This document shows positions 4,001 through 58,850 of a DNA stretch of 64,000 bases, piece after piece. Below the pieces are notes generated by a model that was not told the DNA's origin, did not search any database, and saw nothing but the letters and a program-made list of their open reading frames with translations. Numbering within the stretch: the first letter of the stretch is position 1; every line of letters starts with the position of its first letter. Source of the stretch: Setoptus koraiensis (lineage: Eukaryota; Animalia; Arthropoda); the NCBI GenBank assembly GCA_048013815.1, contig CM106586.1:3844001-3908000 (forward strand). The letters run 5' to 3'. A program made the translations under genes and the position numbers.

Positions 4001-5268
4001 CGTTGCGATGCGGCCAATCTGATAAGTGGGCCCGCCACGCTACGCGCCATGATGAGCGACCGACCACAAAAAACAAGCCAACGCTAATGATCGCCGCCTT
4101 ATCACTTCCTATCCGAGCCGCTGTCTGGCTGGCGCGCTGGCTGGCTGGCATGCACCGAGGGCCCCGAAGTGGCCTGGCGGTGCGCGGTGCATGGTGCAAA
4201 TTCGCTGAGTTGGGGCGCTCGCCGAGCGCAACCAATCAAACGCTTTTTGTGTGTTCGCAAATTAGTATGATCATCATGACACCAGGCTATCGATTAGGTG
4301 ACTAGCTCTGTATACAGCCCAGAGACAGAGACAGCGTATAAACAACAAGCTCGTGTGCGAACAAGTGAAAGTCACATCACTGTCGCTGCTTATTGTTTAA
4401 CAAACACACACACACACTCACGAGTAACGGTACATAGCGACGTTACGTAACGACAATAAACGCTTGTTGTTCAACGCTTCGGCTTGTCGTTGGCCTCAGC
4501 TTGTCGTTGGGCTCAACTCACATTGGCTACGCCAATCAATGTTCACCATCATCAGCGTTGCGTAACCACAGTCGCGGGCCCCATTCACTCTGCAACTGGG
4601 GCCCGAGTTGCGCGGGCAGCGGGGCCCCAGTGGCAGCGGCCCAGAGGAAGTTGTCGTGAGTCGCTTGTTATCTCTAATTAAAACAAATAAATCTAGATAT
4701 ATCTCCAACAGGCGCCACTGTGTGCGCGTGTATCTAGATAAGACTCAGCGCCACAAACTTATCTATCCAGATACACGCTGGCTGCAACTACGTACAATGT
4801 ATTTAAATTAAAGCGGCCGAGTAGCAGCAGCTTAAAACTGGCACTACAACTAAGTGCTTATCTCACTCAGCCAGCAGCACTATTATTAGAAATGGGCCAA
4901 TCATTGGCACTGGCACGCAGTTTAATAGTGGCACCAGTTTAGTTGGCTGGCTTGGCGTTATTTGGCAGCAAAATGGCTGGCCATTTTGCTGCTAACTAAC
5001 GCCACACAAAACAATGGGGCCAACAACTTGTTTTGGCGGCGGCGGCGGCGGCCCCATCAAGCCAGAGCGTGCACATTGATTGGCAATCTTACGCAATAAT
5101 AATAATAATAATAATAGCAACACAGCGACAATAATGACAGCCAAAGCCATGTCGACACGACGCTAATTGTTGTTGTATTTTGTGCCATGTTCTCTCTATC
5201 TCTTTAGCGGCGCCCCTCTGCCGCTTCGTCGTCGTTGTTGTTGCTGTTGTTGTTGTTGTCGTTGTTGC

Positions 5269-5307
<39 letters not shown>

Positions 5308-11300: not shown

Positions 11301-14300
11301 TGGTGTGAGGCCGTTCTTTTGTTTCGCGGTTCCTGGCGCGTCGGGAGTCGCGCGTCGGGAGTCGGGCAAACTGTGTGTGTGTGTGTGTGTGTGCGTGTGC
11401 GGCCGCTAACTGGCGGCCAGCGGGCGCCGCTTGAGAGAATTCAACTGCTGCCGACCCAATTGAGTTGTTGCCTCTCATTCAATTTGCAATTTATAAGTTT
11501 GAGCAGGCCCCGGCGCGCGCACCGTTAAGACACACACACACAATAGCCTGCGTGGCCTCGCCACAATCTAGATGTGGCTGACCTTATTATGGGGCCCGTT
11601 TGCGAGCCCCACTTTGTGTGCGTGTGTGCGAGCTGGGGGCAGCCCCAAGTTGCGCAGCAGCTTATGTTTGGCCAGTTGGGGCCAGTCGGGGCCAGTCGGG
11701 GCCGGTCGGGGGTGGGCAGGCCAGTAATTATATGTATAATGTTGTTGCTGTTAGATAAATCATGATTGAACGTATCAACAACTCAATTTGAGGCCCGCCA
11801 GCGCGCCGTCGTTTGGATTCTGTGCGGGGCTCGCTCTGTTTATGTGCCCTCTGTTTACATGCCCTCTGCTCACCAGCCCCTGCGGCTTACATGCCCGCCC
11901 TGTGGGGCCCGATTGTTCGGCCCACACCCCGACGCTCAGCCGATGTTCGCCACGGTCGTTATAGCGTCGTTGTGTGCCAGACCAATACCGAGACCGCAAC
12001 CGATTGCCCGAGCGCCGGACTGGCTGTCGCGCTAGCAGCTTTGCGGCCAGCAAGCGGCCCCCATTGTTACACCATTACTCGGGTCCGTTAGTGGCCCCGG
12101 AAGCTGGGCCGCTGTTTGATGGGCACGGCTGTTTGACGCAACAACAGCAATAACGCACTGTCTTGCTACAATTGCCGCTGTTGCTGTTGTTGCGGTTCGT
12201 GGCACACGAGCAATAATGGTTTAGCGGACGCATTTTGCACCGTCATCACCTTGAAATAATAATTAGTGGAGTCCCCGTGTCAAAAAAGATAAGTTGGTCG
12301 GCCATTACAATGCAGTGGGGCGACATGCATGCCGGGCATATGCAAATAAACTTTGACGCAGCGACAATAGTGCGACTGGACCAACTGGACGAGCCAACGC
12401 AAACACAATCAATGCCGCTCGCGTTGCGACAATCGCAAAGCCACTCAATTGAGTTGGCCACTCGGTCAATGTGGGGCCCACATTGAGCGTGCTTAAGTGT
12501 TTTTATGTGTAGCTCCATGTGGCCGCAAATCCGGCAAATCGCGAGCTAGCTAGCCGGCCGGCCGGCCGGCACAGCGAAGCAACGCGACAGCCAGATAAAT
12601 TGTGCAAAACAAACGACAATCAAGTGCCAGTATACTTGTGTTTCAAATCAGTTACTACTTCAGCCATGTTGACAATTTGATAAAAATACACACTCAAATG
12701 AACTGACCACCGCGGAGAGCTTTCGTGCGACTTTGCGACAATTTATGTTTCGGTTTGTGTGTGTGTGTGTGTGTTTAGTTGGCGCGACAACAAGATATGC
12801 GACACTTTGCGACACCATTTGTAACTGTCTCGTTATTTGTAGCGAACGTGGCGGGGGCGATTTGTGGCGCGGCTAAACTGTGCCGCCCGGCTGACTGGCT
12901 GGCTGGCTGGCTGACTGGCAAAAACATCGCAGAGCAAACATTGGAGGGGCTTTCATGGTTGCTGTTGTTGTCGTTGTTTTGCTGTTTATTGTTACCACAA
13001 TGGATAGTGGACGTAACTCTTCTCTTGTCGCGCCACCCAATACAAATCTCGTCATCGCCACAACGGCAGCGCCAACGACAGCGACAGCACCAACAAGGGG
13101 GCATAAATGTGTGCTTGTGACACATATAACTAACAACTGATGAATTGAGCCAACGAGCAAACAAGCGCCCAAACAGATAGCTGACCAGCGAGCGGCCAGT
13201 GGCGGCCAGTTTGGCCAAACTAACCGCCACTGGCGACTTATTGTGCGTTAAAATCACCACCAGTAACACAGCTACACCGAACAACAACAACAAATCAAAA
13301 TAAACTATGAAACCATAAACGGACACACAAAAGATGGATTTCTCGCTAAGGGGCCCCACATAAAAGCGCCTGGGCCACGCCAAAGGTATTGCGCCAAAGG
13401 CTGGCGAATGTAGCGGGCCTGTAGGCTGCACGAGCCGCGACTCGTGTAACACGAGCACACGAGCCGTCACAAAGTGAAAAGTGTCCTAAATGCGATGGCT
13501 CGAACACAAACACAATCGCCCTATCGTCCACTATTGGCAATTTATTTTGGCCAGCATAATTTTGGCTGGTTAGCAGTTATTTAAGACCGAGCGAAATCAT
13601 TTAGTGACCAGGCCATTAAACAATGACGCCACAGCCGCATAAATAACGCCCTCTAGCATTATTAACTACTATTCGGGGCCCACTATTTACAGTTGGCCCC
13701 GGCAAGCGGCGCTGGTCAGTTCAGCTAACTGGTCGGACTGCTCAAGCTCTAATCATTAGCTTAACTCGCTCATTGAATAAATAGCGGTCAGCGGCATGGA
13801 GGAATGCGCCCAAAAATAGAGCCGCTTATGCTGTCTACCGGGCGGCTAGGATTGATGGTCTGTTTCGTTAAGCCACTGACTTACTTTGGTGCTTTGCACT
13901 CTACCCGTCTCTGTATCTCTGTCTACTAGACAGTGTCTAGGTGCAATGCATCGGGTGCAGATTGCAACATAAAACAACACTTACAAGGGTCAATCTCTGC
14001 TCGACGCCAACGCTAACGAATGCTCGTCGCGAGGGATCACAACCCCTCGTTAAGTAGCCCTTGATCTGGCGAGCCCGCCAGCGAGTGCCCAGTGACATGG
14101 GGCCGCACTGGGCCCCAAATCACACACATACAGACGAACGCTATGGCACACAAATACTATCACACTCTATACTCGCTGGCAATGTGAGCGAGGCAAACAT
14201 GGCACTATTGCATTTCATCCGGTGCAGGTTGCTGTGTATATTTACTTTCGGCAATCGGTTGCAAGCAAAACATATACTTTCACGGTGAGAGGGTGAAAGG

Positions 14301-26300: not shown

Positions 26301-29300
26301 ATACGCTCAAGAGATACCTCAAAGAGACAGTCAGCGAGCGTTTCAAGAAACAGTGAAATCAGACGTAAGAGTCTACACGATCTGGATGATATTGAAATTG
26401 TCTTTTGGCCAAAAATTTTGACCGGCAACCATTCAATCAATCAATGCTGCGGGAAGAGCATAGAATCTATCAGGCTACTAGTTGATCACAGATATTTTCA
26501 GCGCCTTATTCTGTTAGCCATTTTGATCAACACCATTTCTATGGGTATCGAGTATCACAATCAACCTGAACAGCTTACGGAGACTGTAGAAATAAGTAAT
26601 ATTGTATTTGCGTGCCTTTTCTTGATAGAAATGGTCCTCAAATTATTGGCTCATGGGTTCTATGATTACATCATTGATGGTTTCAATTGTTTCGATGGTT
26701 GCATCGTTCTTCTTAGCGTGCTTGAATTATTTGAAACCTCTGGCTCCGGTCTGTCCGTACTAAGAACATTTAGACTTTTGAGGATCTTGAAACTTGTGCG
26801 TTTTATGCCCGCACTCAAGAGGCAATTAATCATCATGTTGAGAACGATTGACAATGTTGCGGTTTTCTTTGCACTTTTAGTATTATTTATATTCATATTT
26901 AGTATATTGGGTATGAACTTGTTCGGCTGTAAATTCTGTGATCAACTCCCTGATGGCACAACACGATGCGACAGGAAAAATTTCGACTCACTACTATGGA
27001 GTTTAGTAACTGTTTTTCAAATACTCACTCAGGAGGATTGGAATGTATGTATACAATGTCCTATTTGCTTCAATGCCCAATAATCAGATTGATATTCTTC
27101 AATAATTTAATGATCACTGTACTCATATCTGCAGGTTGTATTGTTCAATGGAATGGAGAAAACATCGCATTGGGCTGCACTATATTTTGTTGTCCTTATG
27201 ACATTTGGTAACTATGTGCTATTCAACCTATTGGTAGCTATATTGGTGGAGGGGTTCTCACAAGAGGTATTTATAAGATCCTATAAGCCTGACAACCACA
27301 TTAAAATAGATTACTCACTCTAACACGATTTACTATTGATGCTACTGCCACTTTGATTGTTTTACCCAAACAACGATATGAATATATTCATTTAGGACGA
27401 TCTGAAAGTTTCCTCGAGTTCCAACTACACTCTAAAAGATCAAAGCAACCAGAGCCAAACAGGAAAACAGACACAACAAAAGCGTAACCTGAAGAATGAT
27501 CCTTCAAACAATAGTATCATGCAAGCTATTTCCGGGAGAAAGATGATTGATCCTGAAACAAAATCAGTAATCTCAGACAATTATATCAATGATAAAGTTG
27601 GAAATAAGATATTATTGCCAAAATCTTCGTTAAATGGCAGGGATAACAAGCGCATTCTTCACAGTGTTACTTCTCGCGATGAGACTACCATTGAACAACC
27701 TATGCTGAGGAAGGCTGGTGGTCACACAAGAGCAACGAAACAAGCTAGTTATGGATCAAAGTCATCTAGCCAAATCCGATCAGTTTCTGTTGATCTGGAT
27801 ATGGTCATTGATACTGATAACCAAGCGAACAAATACCTCGATTACTATCAACGGAATATCGAACTCACCCAGAACAACGACAACAGAGGTGAAATCAAGG
27901 GCGAAACAGGAGGTGCTTCAAATACCATGAATTGTTCCATCACTGGTGGAAATAATCCAGCTCAGAAGCGCTTGATATATTTCTACGATAGCAGGGATAA
28001 TATTGAAGAAGGTTAGTCTCACTATAATATATATATTTTATTGATAAAATTACCGTGTTGAGTTGTTCACCGTTTAAGAGTCTTTTCCCTCTCTCTTTCC
28101 ACCAATCTTATAACAGAAATCGAATTTCTAGTAAAATCACTTCAGTCTAACTCATATACGGCCTCTGCTGAGTTGAGGCAACAAAATAGTAAGGGTTGCT
28201 TACAGAACGCTCTCGGCCTGCAAGATTCAACGCGAAATACACCGTTTGCCGTTGCTGCCGTCATTGGTCTACCAATGCCCAATCATGAATTCCAGATGAA
28301 ATCAGATATCTATGTTGATAGAAGATATCATCCTCCAACGATTGTTGCACGTCCGGCGGAAACGTACAGAGGGAAGTGCTCATCCATACCAGATGCAAAG
28401 TCGTGTTTAGATGAAAAGAATGACCATCAACGAAGGTTGTCTGAAAATATTGATAAAAATTTTTTGCTATGTGATCAACCTAAAGATAAATCACGAGTGG
28501 ATTACAACTTCAAAGTTCAGTCTCAATGGTCATCGACACCATGCATCTTAACTGAGTCCAGTATAAACGCTATGCGACTTCATCATGCCTATAAAAATCA
28601 CTATCCTCGCCAATCGGGTCAGCTTAAGTTACTCAAAGGTAAGTTGAAAATAACTATAGTCCATCGACATAGACCAAACATGTAAGTTCGTACGAAAGCT
28701 GACGTTTCATTTGGTCGCTTAAAACATCAAATCACTATAGGTTTTACACGATTTGATGAATCGTGTTCTAGGGTAGATGATCACGGCTATCGTCGAACGC
28801 TCGCGAACTTCCTAGGACATTCTTGTTTAGGTGGATGCCAAGGAAATGGTTCAAGTAGATGTGGACTTTGTCTCCTCTACAAGCCAATCTGCAGGTTCCA
28901 ATTCGGAAAAGCATCATCTCAATCACCCTATTCGTTTACTCTCCCGGATCAGGCAGTGCATCAGCTCAACAATCATGGTAAAAAAAATCATCGATTGCAG
29001 GAAGTTATCAAATCAAACGAAAAGTTCTTGCAAGCGATGTCGAGGCGAGAGGAAAGAGTAAAGAGGGCAAAAATTGCGGCAACTATCAATAACTCGTATG
29101 ACTTTCTTCCAACAAGTAGAGCATTGGCCATAAGACGAGGATCCAGTGCTGTGCTTTCAAGATTGCGCCTCATTCGTCCATCAATTGAATCTATTCTCCC
29201 CACACCCATATCAATGACAGATTCCAGTCGTAACTTCTCCAATACATCACCTCTAAACAAACCGATACTTATGACATCTAGCGTGAGTCGATCGGAAAAT

Positions 29301-32153
29301 ATGGTTGTTCTGGAGTTGGATGAACCCCACGATTCAAAACAGAAAGACAAGCTACTTTCAGAAAATAATTCTGTGTCTGATATGACAGATCAACAAGCCT
29401 CCAACAATGGGGTTGAATATCTCAGGGTTGACCAGAGACCTCTAGGTACTGATAATCGAACTCCATCGATGGGACGCTTCTCCATAACAAGTATATCGGG
29501 TCTCCGATTATCTAGAAATTCTTTAGTAGTGTCCGAAAATACAGATCTCACAGGTAATCAACATGACAGACGTCCCTCTTCTTCAATGCTTGCTCAGCTT
29601 ATAGCGGGCGAACGGGGAATGGGCAGACCCAGTGTGATTGGTTGGTTCCAAGGAAAGAATTCAGCCAGAAGCTCTAATGTTACTCAAACAAGCAAGACTT
29701 GCTCCACAGTAGTTACCGAGAGAGGTACAGCTCTACACTATTTAATGTCAACACGGAGAAGAAGTTTTTCAGGCCCATTCACATGGTTAGAACGCAATCA
29801 CAAAAATAAGAATGATTTATTATTACCTCATGTCTCTCGATATGACAGGATTCAACTCAAACCAAAATCAAAAAAGGAGACCAAGATTCACTCATCTGAT
29901 TATCACAGTGTTAACAACAAACGTGTTTATAAATTGGAGGCGAAGGGTTTCCAGACAACACTTAACGGAGTGTTCTACGTTGTTGCTAAAGACCCTCTCC
30001 GTCAAACAAATAATCAAAGTTTTGAAGGGCCTAGGAAATTCACCGACGAAAATAGCCTTCTAGTTGACAACTATAACGAAGAGGGCTCCCTCGATAATCA
30101 TTCTTCGTTCTTCTATAGCTCGGATGATGAGATGGCGACTGGATTAGAACGCCCTCGTTCGCGCAGCGACAAGACTAGATCAACTAAAAGGACATTCTTA
30201 AAATATTTTCAATGGAATAATTGGATGATCAAGAGAAGAAACTATTCTCTTTTCTTCTTTTCACCCGAGAACAAGTTGCGTAGATTTTGCCTAAGTGTCA
30301 CTAACAGAAGAGAATTCGATTACTTCGTACTATTCTTCATTTCCATGAACTGTGTCACACTTGCCATGGAAAGACCAAAGATACCACCTTACAGCAAAGA
30401 GAGAGAATTTCTGACTATTGCAAACTACTATTTTACATTCTTATTCACATTGGAGATGGCACTAAAAGTTATAGCCAAAGGTCTTTACTATGGCCGTGAT
30501 GCCTACCTCAGCGATAGTTGGAATATCATGGATGGAACGTTGGTCGGTTTCTCTTTGTTCGACTTGCTGCTATCAATTGTAGCAGATAGAAGTCCTAGGA
30601 TATTCGCCATACTCAGAGTATTCAGGCTGCTGAGATCTCTGAGACCACTGAGGGTCATAAATAGACTGATGGGTCTGAAGCTGGTGGTGCAGACTCTGCT
30701 CTTATCCCTGCGACCAATCGGAAATATTGTGCTCATCTGTTGCACTTTCTTCATTATCTTTGGTATTTTAGGTGTACAGTTATTCAAGGGTACATTCTAT
30801 TATTGCGATGGACCAATGCCACTTGAGATAATGAAGCATGTCAAAACTAGAGCTGACTGTCTTGCCGACCCTCGGAATAGATGGATTAATCGAAAATATA
30901 ACTTCGACAATCTTGGGCAAGCATTAATGGCCTTGTTTGTACTTTCTTCGAAGGATGGTTGGGTCAACATTATGTACACAGGCTTGGATGCGGTCGGTGT
31001 GGATAAACAGCCGATCGAGAATCACAATGAATGGAGACTCTTGTATTTTATATCATTCTTACTGCTAGTAGCCTTTTTTGTACTCAACATGTTTGTAGGT
31101 GTAGTTGTGGAGAACTTTCATAGATGCCGAAAGGAACAAGAGATGGAAGAAAAGGCGAGAAGAGCAGAGAAACGACAACGGAAGTTGGACAAAAGAAGAA
31201 GAAGACTGCGAGAGCCCCCCTATTATTCGAACTATGGGCCAGCTAGATCGCTCCTTCACAAGTGGGTCACAGGTGGTTATTTTGATCTCTTCATAGCAGC
31301 TGTGATAGGGTTTAATGTTGTTTTCATGTCATTGGAATACTACCAAATGCCAGCTGAGCTCATCAACGTCCTGAAGATATCTAATTATATATTTACAGTA
31401 GCCTTCATATTGGAGGCAGCCATAAAATCAACGGCTTTGGGCGCAAGACGTTACCTGAAGGACAGATGGAATCAACTCGACGTTATAATAGTTACCCTAT
31501 CTATTTTCGGCATTGTACTAGAGGAGATGGACTCCTTTACTCTGCCTATCAACCCAACATTGCTCAGAGTTTTGAGAGTGATGAGGATTGCACGAGTACT
31601 GAAACTTTTGAAGATGGCCAAAGGTATCCGCGCTTTGTTGGACACAGTAATGCAAGCGTTGCCTCAAGTAGGAAATCTGGGACTACTATTCTTCCTACTG
31701 TTTTTTATATTTGCTGCACTTGGCGTTGAACTATTCGGACGATTAGAATGCAACGACGATTATCCTTGCTCTGGTCTTATGGAACAACATGCTCATTTTC
31801 AGAATTTTGGTTTAGCATTTTTGACTTTATTTAGAGTAGCCACAGGGGACAACTGGAATGGTATTATGAAGGACACCTTGAGGGACAAGTGCGATCCGTC
31901 CAGCAATTGCTTGAAGAATTGCTGTGTTTCACAGTTAATTGCACCTTTGTATTTCGTGATTTTTGTATTGTTAGCACAATTTGTTCTCGTCAACGTAGTG
32001 GTAGCAGTCCTCATGAAACACCTAGAGGAATCTCACCACGAGATGGAGATAGACGAAGAATACGAGCTCGACAAACAGCTGGGAGAAGAGCTGGAGGCTA
32101 AAAAATTGGCGCTTATGGAATCCTTGGAGAGAAGAAACTTGTACTTTGTCTAG
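171..32153 (+). CDS. Ca-alpha1T: T-type voltage-gated calcium channel alpha-1 subunit (Cav3), 9 exons, 3358 aa
   Basis: Exons 171-1027, 22208-22303, 22417-22667, 22764-22853, 22945-27044, 27135-27266, 27396-28011, 28117-28638 and 28741-32153 sum to 10077 nt (3359 codons) with all phases consistent. Four S4 segments are present. Pore residues SLEGW/TQEDW/SKDGW/TGDNW give EEDD, diagnostic of Cav3. Gating-brake helix KKREMERM...[11 protein letters not shown] lies in the I-II linker. Confidence 0.95.
5232..5306. repeat. (GTT)n-rich microsatellite
   Basis: About 25 imperfect GTT/GCT/GTC triplets, near an (AAT)n run at about 5095-5113. Confidence 0.9.
7258..7337. repeat. 8-bp tandem repeat CCGCRAAY x10
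   Basis: Ten units read directly, ordered GAAC,GAAT,AAAC,AAAC twice, then GAAC,GAAC. Confidence 0.9.
9729..9840. repeat. 16-bp minisatellite NGCGGAATTCTGTTGG x7
   Basis: Seven contiguous 16-nt units with no spacers. Confidence 0.9.
17017..17070. repeat. 12-bp tandem repeat ACCAGACGCnnn x4.5
   Basis: ACCAGA recurs at 17017, 17029, 17041, 17053 and 17065. Confidence 0.85.
22945..27044 (+). CDS. Ca-alpha1T: Cav3 exon 5 (domain I pore to domain II pore)
   Basis: Acceptor cacag|GT at 22944/5 and donor AAT|gtatgt at 27044/5. Encodes [16 protein letters not shown] through LTQEDWN. Confidence 0.92.
28741..32153 (+). CDS. Ca-alpha1T: Cav3 last exon (II-III linker, domains III and IV, short C-tail)
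   Basis: Acceptor ctatag|GT at 28740/1, open frame into ORF 28956-32153, with complete domains III and IV. Confidence 0.92.
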
Positions 32154-32203
32154 AGAATCATTCCGTAGAATAAAATACCAAGGTGACTGTCATCATTCCA
32201 GTT

Positions 32204-32983
32204 CTACGTTTTAGTGAACGCTGGTTCGGTCAATAGTGTCCTCATAGCTTCGTTCTGTTCTTTAAAATGTTCGTTGAAGCACATAGCATGCGAGGATTGT
32301 GAAAATCGGAACAAGGGAGCTCGCGCTGGTTGAGTTTCATTGATATCATTAGTCAACTCGGGTATTTCTGGTGTTTTATTAAGTAGTCCGAGACTTTCAA
32401 ATATCATAGATCTATCAGTGGACGGATCATTTGATTTGAGTTCCTCCATGAGCCATTTGTATATTTCCTCTCTTTTAGTTTCCAGTTCAGCTCGAACCTC
32501 TTTTAGGCAATCTACTTCGCTAAAATTATCATCAATATACTTTTGTTTCTCCACAAGTAGCTTTGTGGCCACGAGGAAATCTTTTTTGCTTATATGATCG
32601 TTAACTTTGATAGGTACTTTGAGTAGTTCGTCCACTTCATTCAATAATTGCAGAACCTTTTCATTTGTTTGTGATTCTTCGTTCAATCTTTTAAGATCTT
32701 CCAATCTACACAATAGTAGATTTTGGCAATCCTGTAGGTGTTTCTTTGCTTGCGATAGGCGTTCTTTGGAAGATCTCAGATTAGATGTGATCTTGCTGAA
32801 AGCTTGCATTACCATTGTTAGATCCTTGTGATGAATTAATACTAATTTGTTGAGTTTGTCGTCGCTCGCTTTGAGGCGCTCTTCTAGTTGATTCTTGATA
32901 TGGTCCCTCTCAACATCGTCTTTGCTTGCAGTGAGGTTTTTGATAACTGACATAAGCAGACCAGACTTAATTTGTTCCTCCAT
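32204..32983 (-). CDS. Sec8: Exocyst component 4 (Sec8)-like, miniature 259 aa, intronless
   Basis: SGLLMSVIKNLTASKDDVERD...LLLCRLEDLKRL...KVPIKV...KKDFLVATKLL resembles the EXOC4 N-terminus ([21 protein letters not shown]...MLLHCKRDELRKL). C-terminal LFRFSQSSHAMCFNEHFKEQ resembles the mid-protein [20 protein letters not shown] block (recalled, not aligned). Confidence 0.85.
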   Translation of the reverse strand: MEEQIKSGLLMSVIKNLTASKDDVERDHIKNQLEERLKASDDKLNKLVLIHHKDLTMVMQAFSKITSNLRSSKERLSQAKKHLQDCQNLLLCRLEDLKRLNEESQTNEKVLQLLNEVDELLKVPIKVNDHISKKDFLVATKLLVEKQKYIDDNFSEVDCLKEVRAELETKREEIYKWLMEELKSNDPSTDRSMIFESLGLLNKTPEIPELTNDINETQPARAPLFRFSQSSHAMCFNEHFKEQNEAMRTLLTEPAFTKT

Positions 32984-33975
32984 TGTGGTTGAGACCTCAG
33001 CTTAACTCTAATTTCTTTGGTTAGTATGGTGGCGTAGCCCTGTGCACAGAGGTACACAATGACAACAATAGTATGCTGACAAAATTTGACGATGTGTAAA
33101 TATCAATGTACTATGTAGGTGTAGACATAGCAGTTGAACAAAATGTCGTCGATTTCTATTATTAATCTACTCCCCTCGAGTGCAACTTTATTATCATATA
33201 GAGCAGTACATGGTCGTATAGGATGTGTTTCTCGAGCATTGGTGTCAATTCAATTCAATTGTGCATTGTGTTAGGTTTTTCCAACGTGTCCATCTTTGTT
33301 TATAAAAAGATCCGCGAGGGCAGCGCTGCATGAGAGTTTAGTGTTGAGATGATCTGCGAGCCAACAGTGATACAAGCTGCACGACCGTACCACAAATCAG
33401 GAACTGCACACGTACATTCGGTGTAAGGCGTGAAATCAGAAAAAAAGAAACATTCAATGGAACACTCTGTGGCTGCACTTCGCAATTCTTTTGCTTTGCC
33501 AGCGCCTCTGGTGATTCATTTTGTAAACCGGTATGGATATATTAGAAAAATCTAACACAACTGTATGCAACTGCTGCAGAGCAAAGTGCAAAGAGTTACT
33601 CAATTTTGAATCAGCTGTGCGATATTATCAGATTTGCACGTTTCTGCGATTGCATCGCAACAAATGGTGGTGTAGTTGCACTGTGTGTGAGTGTGTGTAG
33701 CACTGTAGAAGCGACACCAAAAATAAAAGAACGGCCGTTACCCTCATCGTAATGTGCTTTAGCTATAGAGAGGGAGAGAGTAGATTAACACTAATAGCAA
33801 CCAACAGTTGAATTTTTTTCTTTGTTCAATTGCGTTCCATATACACTCAATTGTACAACGCCATCAGATTTGTAGGGATCTACTTACCATCATCGGTATA
33901 TAAACAGATATATAGTTTAAAAAAACTATATAAGAAAGTATAACTGTGTAATTGAAGAACAAGAAACAAAATTGA

Positions 33976-34770
33976 ATGTTTATGGAGGAACAAATTAAAT
34001 TTTACGAGGAACTCGAACAACGATACAATGATGCGCGCGAACAATTATTCAGTATCAAACGGGCGCTAGATTCTTATGATGAAATAATGAAGCAATATGA
34101 CCAACAAATTAATGAAAATCTTGCCATACAAAATATAACAAACGACGAAAGGAAACGCGCCATACTACTAGATTCATTTGACAAATTGGTAGTCAAATAT
34201 GAGAAATTCAGAACAAGACGCAATAATACCGAATTGGAATATAAAAATATTTGCAATTATAAGATACAAACCGAAAGTGATTTAAACTCAATGAAAACAC
34301 AAATAGCCAATTTGAAAAAGTTACAAGACATAACACACACTTCCACCGATAGATTAGAATCTGTTTACGATTATGATGTCGAGACAATTAATTTCCTAAA
34401 TGAAGGCAACTGGAATCTTGGCATATCATGCGATCGAACATTAGCCGAATCACTATTGGGCTGTTTTCCTAGTGGCACATTCCTAGTTCGAGCTTCTAAA
34501 ACAAAACCGGACTCATTTGCGTTGTCTGTCGTGGCCAATTCTAAAGTCCAACATTGTCTAATAGACAAAATCAGTGACGGATATTGTTTTCATCCGTCGG
34601 GCCCTCAACACAGTACTTATCCCTCACTATGTTCATTAGTTATGGAATACAGGCACAAGTCTTTGTTGAAACATCACCCCCAATTGAATACAAGTCTCAT
34701 TTATCCTGTGCTCTCACAAATTAGGAAAAATCAACCAAATGATAATATAGGAAGAGATGTATACCCTTAG
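33976..34770 (+). CDS. Pi3K21B: Class IA PI3K regulatory subunit-like (iSH2 coiled coil plus C-terminal SH2), 264 aa
   Basis: About 125-aa coiled coil (IKRALDSYDEIMK...ESDLNSMK) followed by an SH2 domain: W...DRTLAESLLGCFPSGTFLVRAS...FALSVVANSKVQHCLI...YPSLCSLVMEYRHKSLLKHHPQLNTSLIYPV. Confidence 0.8.
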   Translation: MFMEEQIKFYEELEQRYNDAREQLFSIKRALDSYDEIMKQYDQQINENLAIQNITNDERKRAILLDSFDKLVVKYEKFRTRRNNTELEYKNICNYKIQTESDLNSMKTQIANLKKLQDITHTSTDRLESVYDYDVETINFLNEGNWNLGISCDRTLAESLLGCFPSGTFLVRASKTKPDSFALSVVANSKVQHCLIDKISDGYCFHPSGPQHSTYPSLCSLVMEYRHKSLLKHHPQLNTSLIYPVLSQIRKNQPNDNIGRDVYP

Positions 34771-35352
34771 TGATAGGAATCATAACTACCAATGCCTCCT
34801 AGTTTCTCCTAGTTGAACTACAGCGCCTAGTCTCAACATTAATTATTCAATTAAGATGCTCTTTTATGATTAACAAGACGGTTTTGTAACAATATTTTTA
34901 CCCGGATGTAAGTTTTATGAAATTCACGCTTTAGATTAAGGCTGGCCCGTACCACGTGTATTCTCTTCTAGTGTCTATAGAAGCTCATTTTAGCAATCTA
35001 ATATTGATAAAATTTCCGCGCGATGTTAACTGTCTATCATCCATGACTGGTATAAAAATTACTAAATTGTTGTCGTCGTCTCACCAAGTGCGAATACTCA
35101 TTTCCCTCCAAGCACTTTGATCGCACCTGATTACATACTCTCATGAGTATTTTATCTAGATCATTATCTTCCATTGGTTAGCTCACTCAGCTTACTAGAT
35201 TTTCCGTTTAAATCTCGTCTAGATCACGCTTATTTTTCTTGCAATAACAACTTAGAACATCTTGACATCAGCTAATTAGACATCGCGAGGCTGTCGGAAC
35301 CTAATATCATCATCTAATTATAATACTAATATAAGCTCTGGTCAAACTCAAG

Positions 35353-35571
35353 ATGCAATTATCATCAATTGTTGCTTCGATATTCGTAGTTTCTGCCGTA
35401 ACATTATCAGTATGGCAAATCTTCTCTCATCTGAATCATTTCTCCAAGCCTTATCTGCAGAAATACACTGTGAGAATACTATTGATGGTGCCAATATACT
35501 CAATCAATGCTTGGGTGGCCCTCACTCTACCAAGTTTCGGAATTTATTTAGATACTGTGCGTGAATGCTAT
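35353..35571 (+). CDS. TMEM184: TMEM184 family (OST-alpha-like) protein, 5' part only, cut by assembly gap
   Basis: FVVSAVTLSVWQIFSHLNHFSKPYLQKYTVRILLMVPIYSINAW...IYLDTVRECY is the typical TMEM184 N-terminus. It runs into Ns at 35572. Confidence 0.85.
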
Positions 35572-36071
35572 NNNNNNNNNNNNNNNNNNNNNNNNNNNNN
35601 NNNNNNNNNNNNNNNNNNNNNNNNNNNNNNNNNNNNNNNNNNNNNNNNNNNNNNNNNNNNNNNNNNNNNNNNNNNNNNNNNNNNNNNNNNNNNNNNNNNN
35701 NNNNNNNNNNNNNNNNNNNNNNNNNNNNNNNNNNNNNNNNNNNNNNNNNNNNNNNNNNNNNNNNNNNNNNNNNNNNNNNNNNNNNNNNNNNNNNNNNNNN
35801 NNNNNNNNNNNNNNNNNNNNNNNNNNNNNNNNNNNNNNNNNNNNNNNNNNNNNNNNNNNNNNNNNNNNNNNNNNNNNNNNNNNNNNNNNNNNNNNNNNNN
35901 NNNNNNNNNNNNNNNNNNNNNNNNNNNNNNNNNNNNNNNNNNNNNNNNNNNNNNNNNNNNNNNNNNNNNNNNNNNNNNNNNNNNNNNNNNNNNNNNNNNN
36001 NNNNNNNNNNNNNNNNNNNNNNNNNNNNNNNNNNNNNNNNNNNNNNNNNNNNNNNNNNNNNNNNNNNNNNN
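35572..36071. other. Assembly gap (500 N)
   Basis: Exactly 500 Ns, probably a nominal scaffold gap of unknown true size. Confidence 0.99.
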
Positions 36072-37411
36072 GTCAACAGAGCGCTAATAAAGAATCTCAT
36101 CTCGATATACCGCACAAAAGCAGTGTTTTAAACAAAAAGAAGATAGCAAACTGTCTGTTGAATAGCTTGAAGACTTATACGGGTGATTCGAAGACGAACA
36201 AAAGTTTCGCTCACCAAAAAAGTAACACCGTCAATGTCAATGCGATATGGCCGGTGAATAAACAGCACATTAAGTTTAACTCGGGACTATTCTTCGTTTT
36301 ATTGTCTAGTAGTTTGCTAGTAACCTTACTGGGACAAATAAGCGTTGATTGTGAGCCTCAGCGTTTTCAAGCCAACAGGCCTGCGCGACAGATTGATTGT
36401 CAGTAAGTATGATAGAAACTATGAAGTCATTAACCATCATGGGTATTTTGATCGACTCTCATCCTACTTCATTATTCTCTCATTTAATTATACTATAAAT
36501 TCTCAGGAAGTTTGTTTTCGCACCAGGTTGTCGGGGTATAAGCGCGAAAAGGTCATCGCGTGAAGACCAACCGAAGACTCTCATGGATATGGTGGAAGCC
36601 CTACCATCTTCGTCATCTCGTTCGTTCAACCCGAGAGTTTCATCTAGTTATCATCAGGTATTCATTCCTCCTGATGCATTATCAGGGGAGTTTCAGGAGC
36701 CTCAATTCTATCCTAGACCACTGTTTCGCTTTCCATCAACCTGGAATCAAGTTTAACGCAAGCCTAGATCACATAGAACTCGAGATGGCTACACTAGTCT
36801 CACAAAGTGAGCATAGGAAACCTATTCATCAAGAGGAAGAATGCTTGTAATTCAAAACATGTTCGAGAGCCCTACTGATGTCACTCATCAGTTATCGCAA
36901 CGAGAGTTTGGAGATGGTGCTCTCATATATCAGATTATTCAGAATTAAAGACGAAGCGAGCGATGTACATAAGTTATTTCAGTATCATATAAAGCACGGT
37001 TAACTCAGGGTGTGTTCCTTACATGAAAACAAAGATTAAACATTGGAGGTAGTAGAAGGTTGGGAATTGAACCAAGATGGTAACAAATGGCACCATTTGT
37101 TCATAAATTGAGACTGGATATCGTAAAACAAACAGAGGAGACATATGGTAATGTAACAACCACAAATAGTTGTTTAATTGAAAGAATAAATAGTGTCAAG
37201 ATCGATGAGGTGAGCAAATTTGGTGAATTCGACTGTTTGCCGTCACGACACTAAATTTAATTTTGCTTCAGTTTCTCAGTTTCTAGACTATTAAATTATT
37301 CTTGCACTTTTGAAGCGATGAGAGACAACCCTTATAAATCCAGCATTGAAGTTGCTGTCTGAATATTGCTTGACTACTGAACAACTAGATGCTTAGTTAC
37401 TTAGAACCATC

Positions 37412-38252: not shown

Positions 38253-40691
38253 ATGGACTCCTACTCATCAGATTCGAGTCACTCTACTTTCGCTAACACC
38301 GGCAATAGTTTCATATCAGGAACCTCAGCCTCTTTAGAGAGTTTCGTTTCATCGGGTGTCAATGAATTTAATACCAGTAGCGACTTGAAACAAATGTTAG
38401 AATCGAACAGAGATGATGTCAAATTGGAAGCAATGAAATGTATCACCACTATGACGGCAAAAGGCAAGATGACATTACCTAGAAGTCTATTTCCACATAT
38501 CGTCAAGAATGTTTCTTCAAAAAATGCTGAATTGAGGAAATTGGTCTACTTATATCTAACCAGCTTTGGCGACCAAGAGCCTGACATGGCCCTTCTATCT
38601 ATCGCCAGTATTCAAAAGTCTCTGAAGAATCCCAACCCCCTTGTTCGATCATCAGCTCTAAGAGTGCTCACTTCTATGAGGTTGAATATTTTATCAGTAA
38701 TACTTGTAGCAACAATTAAGAATGCTGTTAATGACTTATCGCCTTATGTTAAGAAGACAGTGGCTCACGCAATAGTTAAAATCTACAGGTTAGATCCAAA
38801 CCTGAAAGATGAGTTAGTGGAATATATTCAAAGGCTACTTAACGATAAGAATAGCATGGTTATAAGCTCGGCTGTTGTGGCCTTCGAAGTAGTGTGCCCT
38901 GAGAAGCTCGAGATGATACACAAGCATTATAGAAAATTTTGTTCATTGCTGGCTGACTGTAGCGAATGGGGTCAAGTGATACTGTTAAACTTACTTATGC
39001 GTTACGCGAGGGGGCAATTCTTGGATCCTAACTGTTCGCCAGATGCAACAGGAAGTGATGATATACTACCACTAGACCAGGATCACAGACTATTGTTGAG
39101 ATCTGCAAAACCATTGTTACAGTCTCATAATTCGGCAGTTGTTTTAGCTGTGGTACAATTGTATTTGACTGCGGCGCCTCACAATGAAATCCGATCAACT
39201 ATCGTACGACCGCTCATACGACTTTTACATTCACATAGAGAGATACAGTTGATCATATTGAGTCTTTTGGAAGATCTAACATCAAAGCAACCAGACTTAG
39301 ACCATGGAAAACAAGATAAATCAAAATCAAATGCTGATGTCGAACATCAAGACTCAACGAAAGATCAACTTTCTGAAATAGTTGTGTCGTCCCTATCTGA
39401 AAAAGATGAAGATAACGGCACCACCGATGGGAATAATCTACTCGAGTCTGCGGAAAACAATGACGATGATGGGGGTACCAGCGATGATGAAAAGGCAGTT
39501 AAGTTCTCTTATAAAGATATGTTCCAGCCTTATTTGAAATCTTTTTTCATCAAACCCACTGACTGTACTCTAGTGAGAATATTGAAATTGCGAATTCTTA
39601 CCAATCTCAGCTCGTCAGCAAACATATCCTTGGTTCTTCGCGAGTTGCAAGCATACATCGTGAATTATGTTGATGACGAAGATTTTATATCGGCCACCGT
39701 CCAAGCAATAGGAACATGTGCCTCAACAATAAAGGAAGTCGCTCCTGTGTGTTTGAATGGGCTCACCTCATTATTATCGAACAAAAACGAAATTATTGTT
39801 TCCGAGGCTATAGTTGTGTTGAGATCCCAGATAATAAACAAGGATGACAATGATACTACAGCATCAACAATCATTAAGCAAGTGACAAAATTGTTGCCCA
39901 ACATAACAACACCTCAAGCGAGAGCCACTATAGTATGGATACTTGGCGAATATTGCAATAAGAACGTAAGGGCGGCCAAATGTGCACCGAACGTTCTGAG
40001 ACAAGTAGCTAAGAGTTTTTGCAACGAAGATAGCATTGTCAAATTACAAGCACTAAATCTTGCCGCTAAACTACTTCTATCAATAGATAAAGAAGAAAAG
40101 AAAGACTTACATGAAAAGATAACTTTGTTGTCCAACTACATATTCAGTCTAGCAAAATATGACCTCAACTATGACGTTCGAGATCGTGGAAGGTTCCTTA
40201 AACAGTTGATATCCGATGAGAAACTGAGCCAGAGAATATTAGTTGATCAGTGTCAATTGAAAAAACACAATTCCATCTCGAGTGGTACATCTAAATCACG
40301 TTTATTTTTCGCTAATGGACAGACGTCATCAAAAAGCAATCGGGTAAACGACTTTACTCCGGGCACCCTCTCACATTTCGTTGACCATATGCTGCCAGGG
40401 TATCAACCTTTGCCAGAATATCCGACTGAACAGCCAGACACAACAGTGAGACTTACCACCATCGCGCAAAGCCAACTGGGTAGCAGCCTCATCACAAATG
40501 AGGACAACAAGAGTGGCACCGGTGCTAAGGTGTCTGGGGATGGTCGAATAGTTGATAATCATCAAATAGAGATCAGCTCTGAGAGCGAGGATGACGATGA
40601 AGATGAGAGTGAGTGCGAGTATGAGGAGGTAGACGAAGAGGAAGAAATTGAGGTTACCGATGAAGAGGAGAGTAACCCTCAAATCAAGTAA
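38253..40691 (+). CDS. AP3B: AP-3 complex subunit beta (ruby/AP3B-like), 812 aa, intronless, no ear domain
   Basis: DLKQMLESNRDDVKLEAMK, LFPHIVKNVSSKNAELRKLVYLYL, EWGQVILLNLLMRYARGQF, LDQDHRLLLR, YDLNYDVRDRGRF and GTLSHFVDHMLPGYQPLPEYP are AP3-beta trunk motifs. It ends after the acidic hinge. Confidence 0.93.
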   Translation: MDSYSSDSSHSTFANTGNSFISGTSASLESFVSSGVNEFNTSSDLKQMLESNRDDVKLEAMKCITTMTAKGKMTLPRSLFPHIVKNVSSKNAELRKLVYLYLTSFGDQEPDMALLSIASIQKSLKNPNPLVRSSALRVLTSMRLNILSVILVATIKNAVNDLSPYVKKTVAHAIVKIYRLDPNLKDELVEYIQRLLNDKNSMVISSAVVAFEVVCPEKLEMIHKHYRKFCSLLADCSEWGQVILLNLLMRYARGQFLDPNCSPDATGSDDILPLDQDHRLLLRSAKPLLQSHNSAVVLAVVQLYLTAAPHNEIRSTIVRPLIRLLHSHREIQLIILSLLEDLTSKQPDLDHGKQDKSKSNADVEHQDSTKDQLSEIVVSSLSEKDEDNGTTDGNNLLESAENNDDDGGTSDDEKAVKFSYKDMFQPYLKSFFIKPTDCTLVRILKLRILTNLSSSANISLVLRELQAYIVNYVDDEDFISATVQAIGTCASTIKEVAPVCLNGLTSLLSNKNEIIVSEAIVVLRSQIINKDDNDTTASTIIKQVTKLLPNITTPQARATIVWILGEYCNKNVRAAKCAPNVLRQVAKSFCNEDSIVKLQALNLAAKLLLSIDKEEKKDLHEKITLLSNYIFSLAKYDLNYDVRDRGRFLKQLISDEKLSQRILVDQCQLKKHNSISSGTSKSRLFFANGQTSSKSNRVNDFTPGTLSHFVDHMLPGYQPLPEYPTEQPDTTVRLTTIAQSQLGSSLITNEDNKSGTGAKVSGDGRIVDNHQIEISSESEDDDEDESECEYEEVDEEEEIEVTDEEESNPQIK

Positions 40692-41256: not shown

Positions 41257-41973
41257 ATGCACAACGTTGATCCGAATACTCGCGACCAAGAGGTACAAAT
41301 GGAGCGGATCGAGGAAGAAGATTACGATAGTAACAGTATTACCATAGATAGCAACGATTTAGTGTCTCCAACACCCATAGCGCAGCATCATCGCAGAACA
41401 CCCAATTTCAAACGTTGTCACATATGGGATCATTATTATCCAGGTGATCAGACTCCTAAGGGTAATCATAGGGCTGCAACTTGCAAATACTGTGGTCAAA
41501 ACTACAGAAGAGGCAAACCAGACCTACTTATTAATCATCTCAAGAATAGATGTCAGCATGCAGACAGAGAGGTTAAATTGCTTATAAGTAGCTATGACAC
41601 GAGTAGTCCTCGTAGAAGGCCATCAGGCAGCCAAGGGGAGGTTGCTGTTGCAGAGCCGCAGTTAAAAAACGGTAAGAAAAAATCCACCAAATTGGTTGCA
41701 AGTCCATTCACAGGAGGTTCAACAGGCGATCGCAAAGATTTCACGAATGCTAGCGCAAAAGAAGAAGAATACTGGAAGCTGAAGTATAACAACGAAAAGG
41801 AATATCATGAACTCAGAATGAAAATCCTCAAAAACGAACTTTCTCTGCTAGACGAGAAAAGAAACTCCATAGAGATGGCTCTGGCGAAAAAACTGGAGGT
41901 CGCCGATAAAGAGAAGGAATTCTATGAAGTTCGATTGAAAATGTTGGAGAAAGGAGTGAAATCAGATGAATGA
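41257..41973 (+). CDS. BED-type zinc finger protein with C-terminal coiled coil, 238 aa
   Basis: IWDHY...ATCKYCGQ...LLINHLKNRC fits a BED finger (W, CxxC, H...C). The C-terminal part is K/E-rich and helical, with no transposase catalytic domain. Confidence 0.75.
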   Translation: MHNVDPNTRDQEVQMERIEEEDYDSNSITIDSNDLVSPTPIAQHHRRTPNFKRCHIWDHYYPGDQTPKGNHRAATCKYCGQNYRRGKPDLLINHLKNRCQHADREVKLLISSYDTSSPRRRPSGSQGEVAVAEPQLKNGKKKSTKLVASPFTGGSTGDRKDFTNASAKEEEYWKLKYNNEKEYHELRMKILKNELSLLDEKRNSIEMALAKKLEVADKEKEFYEVRLKMLEKGVKSDE

Positions 41974-42143: not shown

Positions 42144-44717
42144 TTAAAGGTAATGCAATAAGTTGTCCAAATTAACATGAGGCAACGTGTGGAGACTTTC
42201 TCCAACCAAATAGGCTAACTTGTGGGCGTACTGGCATGGAGCTGGTACACGCACTGTACCGGTCCAGTTGAAATACAAATGGCACAATTTATAGGCTAGC
42301 ATCTGCTGGTGCATTGGCTTCAACCCGGTTGTATCCTCTATCACATTGTACATGGTGGGACAGACGGTTCCCTGGCGAGTCAATTGACTGACGAGGTAAA
42401 AGTCGTATCTTGCTTGTCGTGTTACTACCGAGTCCACGACAGTTCCAGGCGGAGGGTTTTGAGGTGGAGCATTGTCTCCACTGATCATGAAGAATTTTGT
42501 TCCAATACGTTTGGTTACTATGATAACAGAGAGTGTGATTTTGGCACCTTCATCACCCAACGAGCGCAATTTCTTTTTGATGGACTTAAGCTCGATGTTG
42601 AAAACGTGGTCCAATTGTCCCTCGCTGACAGCATCTCTGTAGAGGAATATTTTCGATGGTAAACACTTGTTGAGTGAACTCCATTTCTTCACAGCCTCAA
42701 GAAGATTGTTTGCCAAGTTGACTGATAGCTCTTCCAGCTTGTCGTGGTTGTCTGCTTTGGACCACCAGCGGGTCATGGAGTGATTCATTGAGGCACAAAA
42801 GGCGCCGACTGTACGACCACGAGTTGCGGTGTCATGATAGGCGTCGTAGCCACATACCATTGTTTGCTTGGCAGGAATCACTAATGTCCAAGGCTCACCT
42901 CCAATCTTACAGGCCATTTGTATGGCTATCTTTTGGCAGGCCGAGTTGGACTTTCGATCGTCGGACATCAATTTGGCGGTGAAACATTGAGATGGAATGC
43001 CACGCTCGACAGAAAGTACTTTCTTGATGGCATCATAACGTTCCTTGTTGGTATTAGGTAACAGGCACAGTGCAATTGTGGTAGTATCAGGCAGGTTACG
43101 ACAAGCAGATACATATGTTCCAACTCTATCGTCTGGTAGTCTAATGAGATCCACATTTTCAGGCTTGAGCTGTATGCCTATTTGATTCAGGCTGCGACCC
43201 ATCATCTGCTGTATAGGTGTTAATAATTCGGCGTTTGGCCTACTAATGAGGAAAGCCATTTTAGGCAAATTGGGCACTTCAAGTAACGATGCGCCTCTCA
43301 GTGTTTTATCGAAACTTCCGGGCGGGTCACATTTGGGCCATTTTGTAGGGTCTTGACCTTTCATGTTGCCCCAGCATACTGCTTCTGGTGCCATTTGTCT
43401 TCCTTCAACTTGCATGATGTCTTTTTCGTAGCTGTAGTTCCATCTGGTACATTCCTGTTTCACGAATTCGTTGCTATTAAGTTGGCCTAAAAATATCCTG
43501 AGATTTTTGGCCCTGTCTGCTGGGCTCACTTGCGAATGTTTAATCATATCCATTTTGAGCCGGTTGTCATTCCTTTGCTCAAGTGTTAATCCGGTTAAGT
43601 GACACAATTCTGGTACCAGATGTATTGTTCGTTCGCCAGATTGATCTTGTTCGATTTCTCGCTGTCTGCGCAAAGCATTATCAGGCTTGGCCACAACTAG
43701 TGGTTGCCTTTGGTCGTTGATAGGGGCATTGGGATAGGTTCGCCTGTAATATTCTATGTATGACTGTTCCACTCCTTCTCTATTGGTGAAAGTAGATTCT
43801 GGCCTGAGGTCAAATCTGAAATCTTCAACACGGTATGTTTTGTTGTTGTACTTGGTTATAACAGTACAACCAGTGAGCTCACTTCTTACGTTGGCCTGGA
43901 AATTTGTGGCGTCTCGTCGGAATATATTCTGCATCATTCTCAGCAGGGTCGTATCTTGAATTATTTTGTGAACTGAGTCCAAGTTCATGAGTATGCCCCC
44001 GTCATGTCTACTAGCGGCCGTTCGATAACCACCCACTATACTCATCTGGTGATTTCCGGGCAGTTGTGTGCTTAGTTCGTCGTGATAAAAGTCCCGTCGC
44101 AATTGGAAATAGCCCATTCTTCTGAGAAAGTTTCTCATGGCCGTGTTGTACATGCGTAACATCTCGAATGCGCCCCAATCAACTTTGCCAGTCTTCTTAA
44201 TGATAATGTTAACCTGACTCTGGTCGCTTGGATGAACGGCGGTCACTGTTGTGACGTCATTGGGCAACGAAGTGGACGATTTCAGATCTGAGGCACCGTC
44301 AAAGATAACTTTGCCCGAGAAGATGCTCTGTGTTGCCTCTCTCACCATTTGGCCTCTCAATCTGGTATTTTCTACATTTGGCTCAAAGTCTACTCTGTAC
44401 TGTTGAACTTCTGCGGCCGCTGGCAGGTTAATCTTGACGTAATTGGTTAAAAATTTAAGCGGTCTTCCCTGGGTTCCTTGCAGTTCTGTGATGCCGCCGG
44501 GAATTGTTCTTAGCTCGGTGTTTCTGTAGCCGCCGCGGCCTCTCACCAGTGTGCCGGCCTCGCCAGTGGCGCTGCCGGTGCCGCTGCCAGTGCCTGAGCC
44601 GCTACCACTTTCGCTGCTGCTTCCGTCGCCCTGTAGCCGGGGAGGGTTCAGTCGTGACTTTATGCCACCCTCTGGCACATCTTTCGGCGGAATTTCACCC
44701 CTGCCTCGTCCAGTCAT
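42144..44717 (-). CDS. piwi: PIWI-clade Argonaute (Piwi/Aubergine-like), 857 aa, intronless
   Basis: N-terminal GRGRG/RGRGG, GTQGRPLKFLTNY, PAZ (VITKYNNKTYRVED, HLVPELCHLTGLT), MID-PIWI (KIAIQMACKIGGEPW, VCGYDAYHD, YRDAVSEGQ, RVPAPCQYAHKLAYLVGE, LHYL*). Confidence 0.95.
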   Translation of the reverse strand: MTGRGRGEIPPKDVPEGGIKSRLNPPRLQGDGSSSESGSGSGTGSGTGSATGEAGTLVRGRGGYRNTELRTIPGGITELQGTQGRPLKFLTNYVKINLPAAAEVQQYRVDFEPNVENTRLRGQMVREATQSIFSGKVIFDGASDLKSSTSLPNDVTTVTAVHPSDQSQVNIIIKKTGKVDWGAFEMLRMYNTAMRNFLRRMGYFQLRRDFYHDELSTQLPGNHQMSIVGGYRTAASRHDGGILMNLDSVHKIIQDTTLLRMMQNIFRRDATNFQANVRSELTGCTVITKYNNKTYRVEDFRFDLRPESTFTNREGVEQSYIEYYRRTYPNAPINDQRQPLVVAKPDNALRRQREIEQDQSGERTIHLVPELCHLTGLTLEQRNDNRLKMDMIKHSQVSPADRAKNLRIFLGQLNSNEFVKQECTRWNYSYEKDIMQVEGRQMAPEAVCWGNMKGQDPTKWPKCDPPGSFDKTLRGASLLEVPNLPKMAFLISRPNAELLTPIQQMMGRSLNQIGIQLKPENVDLIRLPDDRVGTYVSACRNLPDTTTIALCLLPNTNKERYDAIKKVLSVERGIPSQCFTAKLMSDDRKSNSACQKIAIQMACKIGGEPWTLVIPAKQTMVCGYDAYHDTATRGRTVGAFCASMNHSMTRWWSKADNHDKLEELSVNLANNLLEAVKKWSSLNKCLPSKIFLYRDAVSEGQLDHVFNIELKSIKKKLRSLGDEGAKITLSVIIVTKRIGTKFFMISGDNAPPQNPPPGTVVDSVVTRQARYDFYLVSQLTRQGTVCPTMYNVIEDTTGLKPMHQQMLAYKLCHLYFNWTGTVRVPAPCQYAHKLAYLVGESLHTLPHVNLDNLLHYL

Positions 44718-58100: not shown

Positions 58101-58850
58101 TCAAATAACAGTGACGTTATTATCTTCATCTTCTTCCATTGCACGTTCTCGCATTCTTGCTTTTCGCTTCGGACACTCCAATCTCCAATGTCCGAATTCT
58201 TTACAGTACATACATTGGTTCTTCGCCACTCTTTCTCTCGAGGTCCCTGCTCTACTATACATGGCCATACTCTCATTACTCTCTTCGCTAAATCTCTTCA
58301 ACATTGACTCTTCAGCAATCAATTGTGGTTTCAAATTGACCAGAGTCTGCTCGCTTTCCCGCATCGCGTTCCATCGTGAGATAAAACTTGAATACGGACT
58401 GGGCAGACCAGTCACCACACGTGCTGCTACCATCGAATCTGCAATTTCTATGCCAACGTTTCTTAATTGCTCTGACATTGTTGTTGCTTTTCTTATGTGA
58501 GCTTCCATCGGTTCGTTGTATTCCATTTTCAATGTGAAGAATTCACTTTGTAATGTCATTTTGTTCGCTCTGGACTTGTTGGCATGTACGCTTTTGAGCT
58601 CTTCCCATATTTCTTTGGAAGTGTTGAGATGTATCACTTGCTCTGCATGATCATCATCCAGACTGGCCAGTATCCAAGCCCTGGCTTTCTTGTCTTTCTT
58701 TAACCAATCTTCTCTTTGCGCTGCTGCAGTTGGTGGCCCCTCAGTAAGTACTTGATCAATGTCTTTGGCCATTAACACTGCCTCTACTTACGCTCTCCAT
58801 ACATTGTACTTCTGACCATCGAATTTTCTTATCGTATATTTCTCTTCCAT
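58101..58850 (-). mobile_element. Ty1/copia retrotransposon gag pseudogene
   Basis: MEEKYTIRKFDGQKYNVWRA*VEAVLMAKD (in-frame TAA at 58788-58790), WLKKDKKARAWILASL, SKEIWEEL, VVTGLPSPYSSF and CCHC knuckle CMYCKEFGHWRLEC. No pol was recognised. Confidence 0.88.

Follow-up and report, generated by a model that had tools for sequence, protein, structure and literature searches.

A Sec8 (EXOC4) orthologue that has probably lost about three quarters of its ancestral length in tiny acariform mites

The 64-kb stretch of DNA analysed here (the window) carries a complete, unspliced gene for a 259-aa protein, mini-Sec8, which is probably what remains of Sec8 (EXOC4) in a group of tiny acariform mites, in all likelihood the Eriophyoidea: an orthologue cut down to about one quarter of the ancestral length and kept in that state by selection. 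Judged from the predicted helices, the protein has retained a CorEx helix of about 100 residues, the first bundle's initial three or four helices and a single 28-residue motif. Mini-Sec8 shares with Sec8/EXOC4, a subunit of exocyst subcomplex I, the Sec8_N domain, the long CorEx helix, the start of the first bundle and the mid-protein motif of animal Sec8. However, Sec8/EXOC4 proteins are about 950–1050 aa long, and mini-Sec8 is without approximately 285 internal and 520 C-terminal residues.

The open reading frame had been described in the original prediction as intact and intronless, and this description holds: the ORF has 259 codons from ATG to TAG, and its alignment to relatives is free of internal frame breaks. 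The ORF is on the minus strand (the original prediction named none). Based on a tblastn search with the Sec8 of Dinothrombium tinctorium as the query, there is no Sec8-like sequence in the 64 kb beyond two collinear blocks within this ORF, and neither residues 187–470 nor residues 499–1016 of the query matched anywhere in the window. Introns are scarce in this compact genome, one channel gene having ORFs of 1356 and 1065 codons, and no RNA families were found in the window with Rfam. The parts of the gene are listed in Table 1.

Table 1. Features of the mini-Sec8 gene, in window coordinates
Feature	Position	Strand	Basis
Complete mini-Sec8 ORF, 259 aa, ATG to TAG, intronless	32204..32983	-	ORF list, collinear alignment with 9 same-length relatives, dN/dS
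Sec8 N-terminal homology block	32438..32965	-	Window residues 7-182 vs Dinothrombium Sec8 11-186; tblastn, Sec8_N, yeast 5yfp_D
Predicted single long helix, residues 23-121 (~99 aa), CorEx coiled-coil segment	32621..32917	-	AlphaFold2, pLDDT 84-98
Predicted stub of first CATCHR-type bundle (helices 123-132, 136-153, 158-183, 191-200), remainder deleted	32384..32617	-	AlphaFold2
Poorly conserved linker, residues 201-220, replacing ~285 residues of full-length Sec8	32324..32383	-	pLDDT 31-44, variable alignment columns
Conserved mid-protein Sec8 motif, residues 221-248, PLFRFxxSSHAMCFNEHFKEQ...	32240..32323	-	tblastn vs Dinothrombium 471-498
Lineage-specific 11-residue tail and stop codon	32204..32239	-	Common only to P0001; no non-synonymous change
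Gap to stop codon of convergent T-type-channel-like ORF (28956-32153, +)	32154..32203	.	50 bp; same arrangement in L003

The N-terminal block identifies the protein as Sec8. Residues 30–129 match the Pfam Sec8_N domain (PF04048) with 48.6 bits, compared to a cut-off of 26.8 (E 1e-12), and the best named full-length relative in a profile search, the Sec8 of D. tinctorium (RWS04217.1, P0013, 1016 aa), aligns over its residues 11–186 with window positions 32965–32438 at 51% identity (E 2.5e-40). The expectation that residues 1–185 would resemble the EXOC4 N-terminus is thus borne out. Among solved structures, only yeast Sec8 (5yfp_D) is significantly similar in sequence, over its residues 88–229 (E 8e-5). 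Other CATCHR N-terminal coiled coils (Vps54_N, EXOC6/Sec15_N, Dor1/COG8 and COG4_N) give weaker Pfam matches over the same residues; these N-termini are long helices of the same kind and form the core bundles of tethering complexes. The other CATCHR families score 38.7, 31.1 and 15.8 bits compared to the 48.6 bits of Sec8_N, and the mid-protein motif was seen solely among proteins retrieved as Sec8 relatives, the only set scanned for it. A look-alike search (Atlas) returned nothing but generic CATCHR N-terminal clusters.

When 1.84 billion representatives were searched with a profile built from the short proteins, 499 relatives were retrieved. On local rescoring, many full-length Sec8 proteins were matched twice, once at the N-terminus (profile positions 1–182) and once at about residue 430–500 (profile positions 215–250). 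Twenty-five columns between residues 15 and 118 (Dinothrombium numbering) are invariant across the long, short and super-short forms; these columns include leucines 87, 94 and 101, spaced seven residues apart, and hold from the 1016-aa form to the 167-aa form.

The second block is a conserved motif from the middle of animal Sec8. Residues 471–498 of the Dinothrombium protein match window positions 32323–32240 at 57% identity (E 3e-5), and a profile of the mini-Sec8 C-terminal block matches 78 Sec8 proteins of at least 850 aa, at a median relative position of 0.43. The motif consists of a stretch of basic residues and then PLF[KR]F[DE]xSSHA[IM]S[ML]NxYL[RQ]EQ, and is present in Sec8 from a nemertean, an echinoderm, a hemichordate, amphioxus, an ascidian, a tick, a pseudoscorpion and vertebrates. 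It is nearly invariant among the short Sec8 forms, and could not be detected in yeast Sec8 with a sequence profile searched against the PDB. A 13-letter block that the original prediction had placed near residue 480 of the human protein proves to be real, in that turtle EXOC4 carries a corresponding 22-letter stretch and the median position agrees. Beyond the motif, approximately 520 residues of the CATCHR rod are gone and mini-Sec8 has no Pfam match to Sec8_C (PF20652); in total about 74% of a 1016-aa Sec8 is absent, close to the ‘roughly 70%’ first estimated.

The AlphaFold2 model of mini-Sec8 (m0d3c3be3f855) has a mean pLDDT of 80.8. CorEx coiled coils are 67–115 aa long, and four of them hold each exocyst module together (PMC11555703); the predicted helix of mini-Sec8, residues 23–121, fits within this published range. 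After the bundle stub, the model has a disordered linker at residues 204–228 and a helix at residues 231–252 that lies over the motif. A model of Dinothrombium Sec8 residues 1–540 begins with a comparable arrangement, a long helix at 27–125 and bundle helices to residue 208, and continues with helices from 270 to 424 and disorder from 421 to 484. The next helix, 486–503, covers the C-terminal part of the motif, which thus follows a long disordered stretch and is modelled with only moderate confidence. Approximately residues 113–425 of the Dinothrombium model align to the rods of Exo84, Exo70, Cog5 and Munc13 with Z scores of 8–10, values that the comparison tool itself treats as suggestive at most for helical bundles. 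In a Foldseek search of the mini-Sec8 model against the PDB, no match reached E ≤ 0.001, which is unsurprising for a model dominated by a single very long helix; Exo84 C-terminal domains (2d2s) were matched with a probability of 0.99 over 85 columns and an E value of 0.63.

The short gene is under strong purifying selection. Its 94%-identical orthologue (L003:849–1628) differs at 95 of 780 bases, with a dS of 0.80 and a dN of 0.027, so that the comparison with a relative called for in the original prediction yields a dN/dS of 0.034; from residue 220 to residue 259 there are only synonymous changes. One part of the original interpretation, that the protein reflects a selected internal deletion and not random decay, is well supported by this ratio, by the synonymous-only tail and by the two-block layout found in a clade of 15 sequences; the other part, a minimal exocyst, is a conjecture. 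For comparison, the AP-3 beta encoded in the same window is 51% identical to that of Dinothrombium, a value equal to that of the mini-Sec8 N-terminal block. The best named matches of AP-3 beta, at approximately 50%, are from the acariform mites Oppiella, Medioppia, Dinothrombium, Leptotrombidium and Tetranychus, and further relatives are 62–68% identical.

The end of the gene is a true end. The stops of the relatives are TAG, TAA or TGA at different offsets, and there is no common GT donor. In both the window and L003, the convergent T-type-channel gene ends 50 bp past the Sec8 stop, and the 50-bp gap leaves no room for adjacent 3′ exons. The neighbours are different in other species, giving four genomic neighbourhoods in all: a convergent ORF begins 66 bp past the Sec8 stop in L009, a convergent WD40 (WDR55-like) gene lies approximately 30–45 bp past the stop in L004–L008, which derive from runs of one study, and in L001 a small minus-strand ORF lies approximately 110 bp past the stop, with a receptor tyrosine phosphatase gene on the plus strand approximately 0.9 kb downstream. 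In L009, a WD40 gene is found upstream of the 261-aa Sec8 instead. There is no further Sec8-like sequence on the short-form contigs and, in L001, none ahead of the gene 0.9 kb on. More 3′ exons, which the original prediction had named as a result that would overturn it, are thus unlikely, given the channel gene so close to the stop and the differences in neighbours and stop positions among the other species. We did consider a splice donor at the stop, as the ‘LLSK-stop’ ending of L001 holds GTAAG, suggesting a conserved donor and not a true end. This reading was ruled out: the window, L003, L009, L004, L008, L013 and L056 differ in their end codons and stops without sharing a GT, and nothing Sec8-like is found downstream.

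We also examined contigs assembled from sequencing runs. None of the runs on record as RNA covers the locus, and one 246-nt contig inside the ORF comes from a run guessed to be RNA. Contigs of three further runs (X2, X3 and X5) are at least 99% identical to the parts of the region that they span, although the window itself may derive from X2. None of these contigs has a joint in or near the mini-Sec8 ORF; the single joint, 34116→34414, falls in a p85-like gene. For this gene, a PI3K p85-like ORF (window 33976–34770, plus strand), Pfam gives only a single SH2 domain and a weak match to the inter-SH2 region. Across window positions 31907–34950, low-depth, 100%-identical contigs of X5 cover the ORFs and their immediate flanks and skip the intergenic stretch 33168–33879; this pattern would fit RNA, and the run type is not on record.

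Several other features of the window were noted. The AP-3 beta gene (38253–40691, plus strand) encodes 812 aa with only Adaptin_N/HEAT-type domains in Pfam; AP-3 beta is also short in acariform relatives (772–898 aa), compared to approximately 1050–1100 aa with AP3B1_C in most animals. An ORF starting at 35353 is interrupted by a run of N (an assembly gap) at approximately 35565–36085. A zf-BED match at 41257–41973 (plus strand) scores 20.0 bits, just under the Pfam cut-off of 20.6; an intact Argonaute/Piwi gene with PAZ and Piwi domains occupies 42144–44717 (minus strand), and a copia-type gag ORF 58101–58778 (minus strand). Positions 2001–12000 have a G+C content of 51–57%, compared to 38–41% in most of the window, and contain few long ORFs.

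The shortened layout is not peculiar to this genome. A word search returned nine proteins of 245–261 aa, one 94% identical to mini-Sec8 and eight 48–56% identical, all with the same layout. Together with still shorter proteins, these form a clade of 15 species-level sequences (the window and 14 others) with support of 100/100, in which the 94% orthologue is joined by eight proteins of 245–261 aa and five of 165–185 aa. The window-type proteins correspond to Dinothrombium residues 1–186 joined to 471–498. The five super-short proteins (P0011, P0012, P0016, P0031 and P0069) correspond to residues 1–124/131 joined to 471–494, having also lost the bundle stub (about residues 125–200) but kept the CorEx helix. 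Super-short Sec8 genes are those of L004–L008 (for example, L004:272–775 and L008:132–641).

Two longer truncated proteins, on metagenome contigs from mite-like organisms, retain internal sequence. P0022 (447 aa, L056:2181–3524) spans Dinothrombium residues 11–494 in one ORF and then stops, with no Sec8 C-terminal half in the 6 kb downstream, and P0015 (282 aa, L013:328–1176) corresponds to residues 11–185 joined to 435–498. Thus, P0022 retains internal residues 187–434 and P0015 retains 435–470, but all of the shorter relatives keep the CorEx helix and end within a few residues past the same motif. A tree built from the N-terminal block sets the short clade beside acariform Sec8 (split 100/100). 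Within the clade, the window sequence and its 94% relative are the sister group of all other members, among which the 165–185-aa forms are nested; P0022 and P0015 group outside it, with P0014, a protein whose sequence continues beyond residue 186. The AU test does not reject the union of every truncated form in one clade (P = 0.35), and both one origin and several origins of truncation are compatible with the tree and with this test. The proteins of 447 aa and 282 aa could represent either intermediate stages or independent truncations at the same point.

If mini-Sec8 were an extra copy, the genome would hold a full-length Sec8 at another locus, and the short version might be a regulator, a competitor for the CorEx bundle or a specialised isoform turned gene. 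We consider this unlikely. Our search of this genome covered the 64-kb window, and full-length mite Sec8 proteins do exist in the databases (P0010, as well as P0018, a single ORF of 1044 aa on a contig of 3.7 kb), as does P0014, the close relative of the 282-aa P0015. However, P0018, P0010 and P0014 come from other samples than the short forms, and the profile search over 1.84 billion representatives yielded only short proteins inside the clade. Moreover, a scan of metagenome contigs for exact patterns of two near-invariant C-terminal peptides, which had no positive control, found 41 Sec8 loci, and not one of them was from the metagenomes of a sister species in which the 247-aa form occurs (on contigs of 14–16 kb). 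The N-terminal block has also evolved no faster than the housekeeping AP-3 beta, and both this rate and the low dN/dS are as expected for a sole essential copy.

A second explanation, to which we give a low probability, is that mini-Sec8 has left the exocyst, the complex being degenerate or lost, and that the helix and motif are kept for another tethering or coiled-coil partnership. In its favour, at least 75% of the protein can be dispensed with, some species retaining only the helix and the motif, and the Vps54_N and Sec15_N matches mark the region as a generic CATCHR N-terminal coiled coil. Drastic changes to the exocyst occur mainly in parasites; the octamer is usually kept, and its total loss is rare and tends toward parasitic organisms (PMC11555703). 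Against it, the CorEx region has approximately 50% identity to canonical Sec8 with its core positions conserved, which is most easily explained if the partners of the helix are unchanged. We know of no report that the whole exocyst has been lost in any animal.

It is improbable that the gene has been split, with the C-terminal half of Sec8 encoded separately and joining the complex non-covalently, although the side-by-side packing of exocyst rods suggests that such a split could be tolerated. There is nothing Sec8-like elsewhere in the window or in the 6 kb past the 447-aa form, the exact-peptide scan (again, with no positive control) produced no C-terminal-half locus from the metagenomes of the sister species, and the shrinkage to 165–185 aa fits loss and not partition. 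A word search with the C-terminal half was saturated by ordinary Sec8 proteins. Proteins of 650–745 aa without Sec8_N, which we considered as candidate split genes, are second exons of the ordinary two-exon Sec8 of mites and come from other samples. Finally, an artefact (a break in the assembly, a pseudogene in decay, or an ORF that is merely exon 1 of something longer) is largely refuted and deserves very little credence: gene callers do often report single exons on unspliced contigs, and ordinary mite Sec8 (L011) has a first exon of 303 codons followed by one of 736, but the breakpoints of the short forms at 186 and 498 both miss the intron near residue 300, the stops and close neighbours differ among species without a shared donor, purifying selection extends through the tail, and the contigs of X2, X3 and X5 agree with the window, with the reservation already made for X2.

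Thus, we favour the reading of mini-Sec8 as the Sec8 orthologue itself, and on sequence grounds it would still contribute the Sec8 helix to the CorEx bundle of four helices, shared with Sec3, Sec5 and Sec6, that holds subcomplex I together. This role is suggested by the N-terminal block, which is as conserved as AP-3 beta, and by the invariant core positions. Since none of the reduced forms has lost the motif, it probably provides another essential contact, be it intramolecular or with a partner subunit. The missing rod domains would have carried functions that are not needed in these mites. The reduction may have been stepwise, with the C-terminal half lost first, followed by internal deletions; the 447-aa and 282-aa forms may fit such a course without establishing an order. 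We put forward more tentatively, as a possibility somewhat short of even, that a whole superfamily of animals carries out exocytosis with a Sec8 made of hardly more than the CorEx helix and the 28-residue motif and has no full-length copy, the rod being dispensable for exocyst function in an animal and the overlooked motif, widespread in Metazoa, an essential latch of the exocyst.

No earlier description of mini-Sec8 was found in the literature searched. Word searches of eriophyoid genome papers found no mention of the exocyst or Sec8, and nothing relevant was found in the literature on the exocyst together with eriophyoids, Demodex or genome reduction. The exocyst, which serves the docking of secretory vesicles at the surface of the cell, is viewed as an octamer of long rod subunits that is nearly always whole, but here a core subunit is mostly deleted in an animal lineage. 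If mini-Sec8 is the sole Sec8, then the CorEx helix and a short motif would be the parts still needed, and very small, simplified animals, at least, would be able to live without approximately 75–85% of the protein. The motif in fly, worm and mammalian Sec8, as well as a minimal Sec8 construct, would give exocyst biologists testable targets. For the eriophyoid mites, mini-Sec8 would add a within-protein case to a genome streamlining that has so far been mainly one of intron and gene loss.
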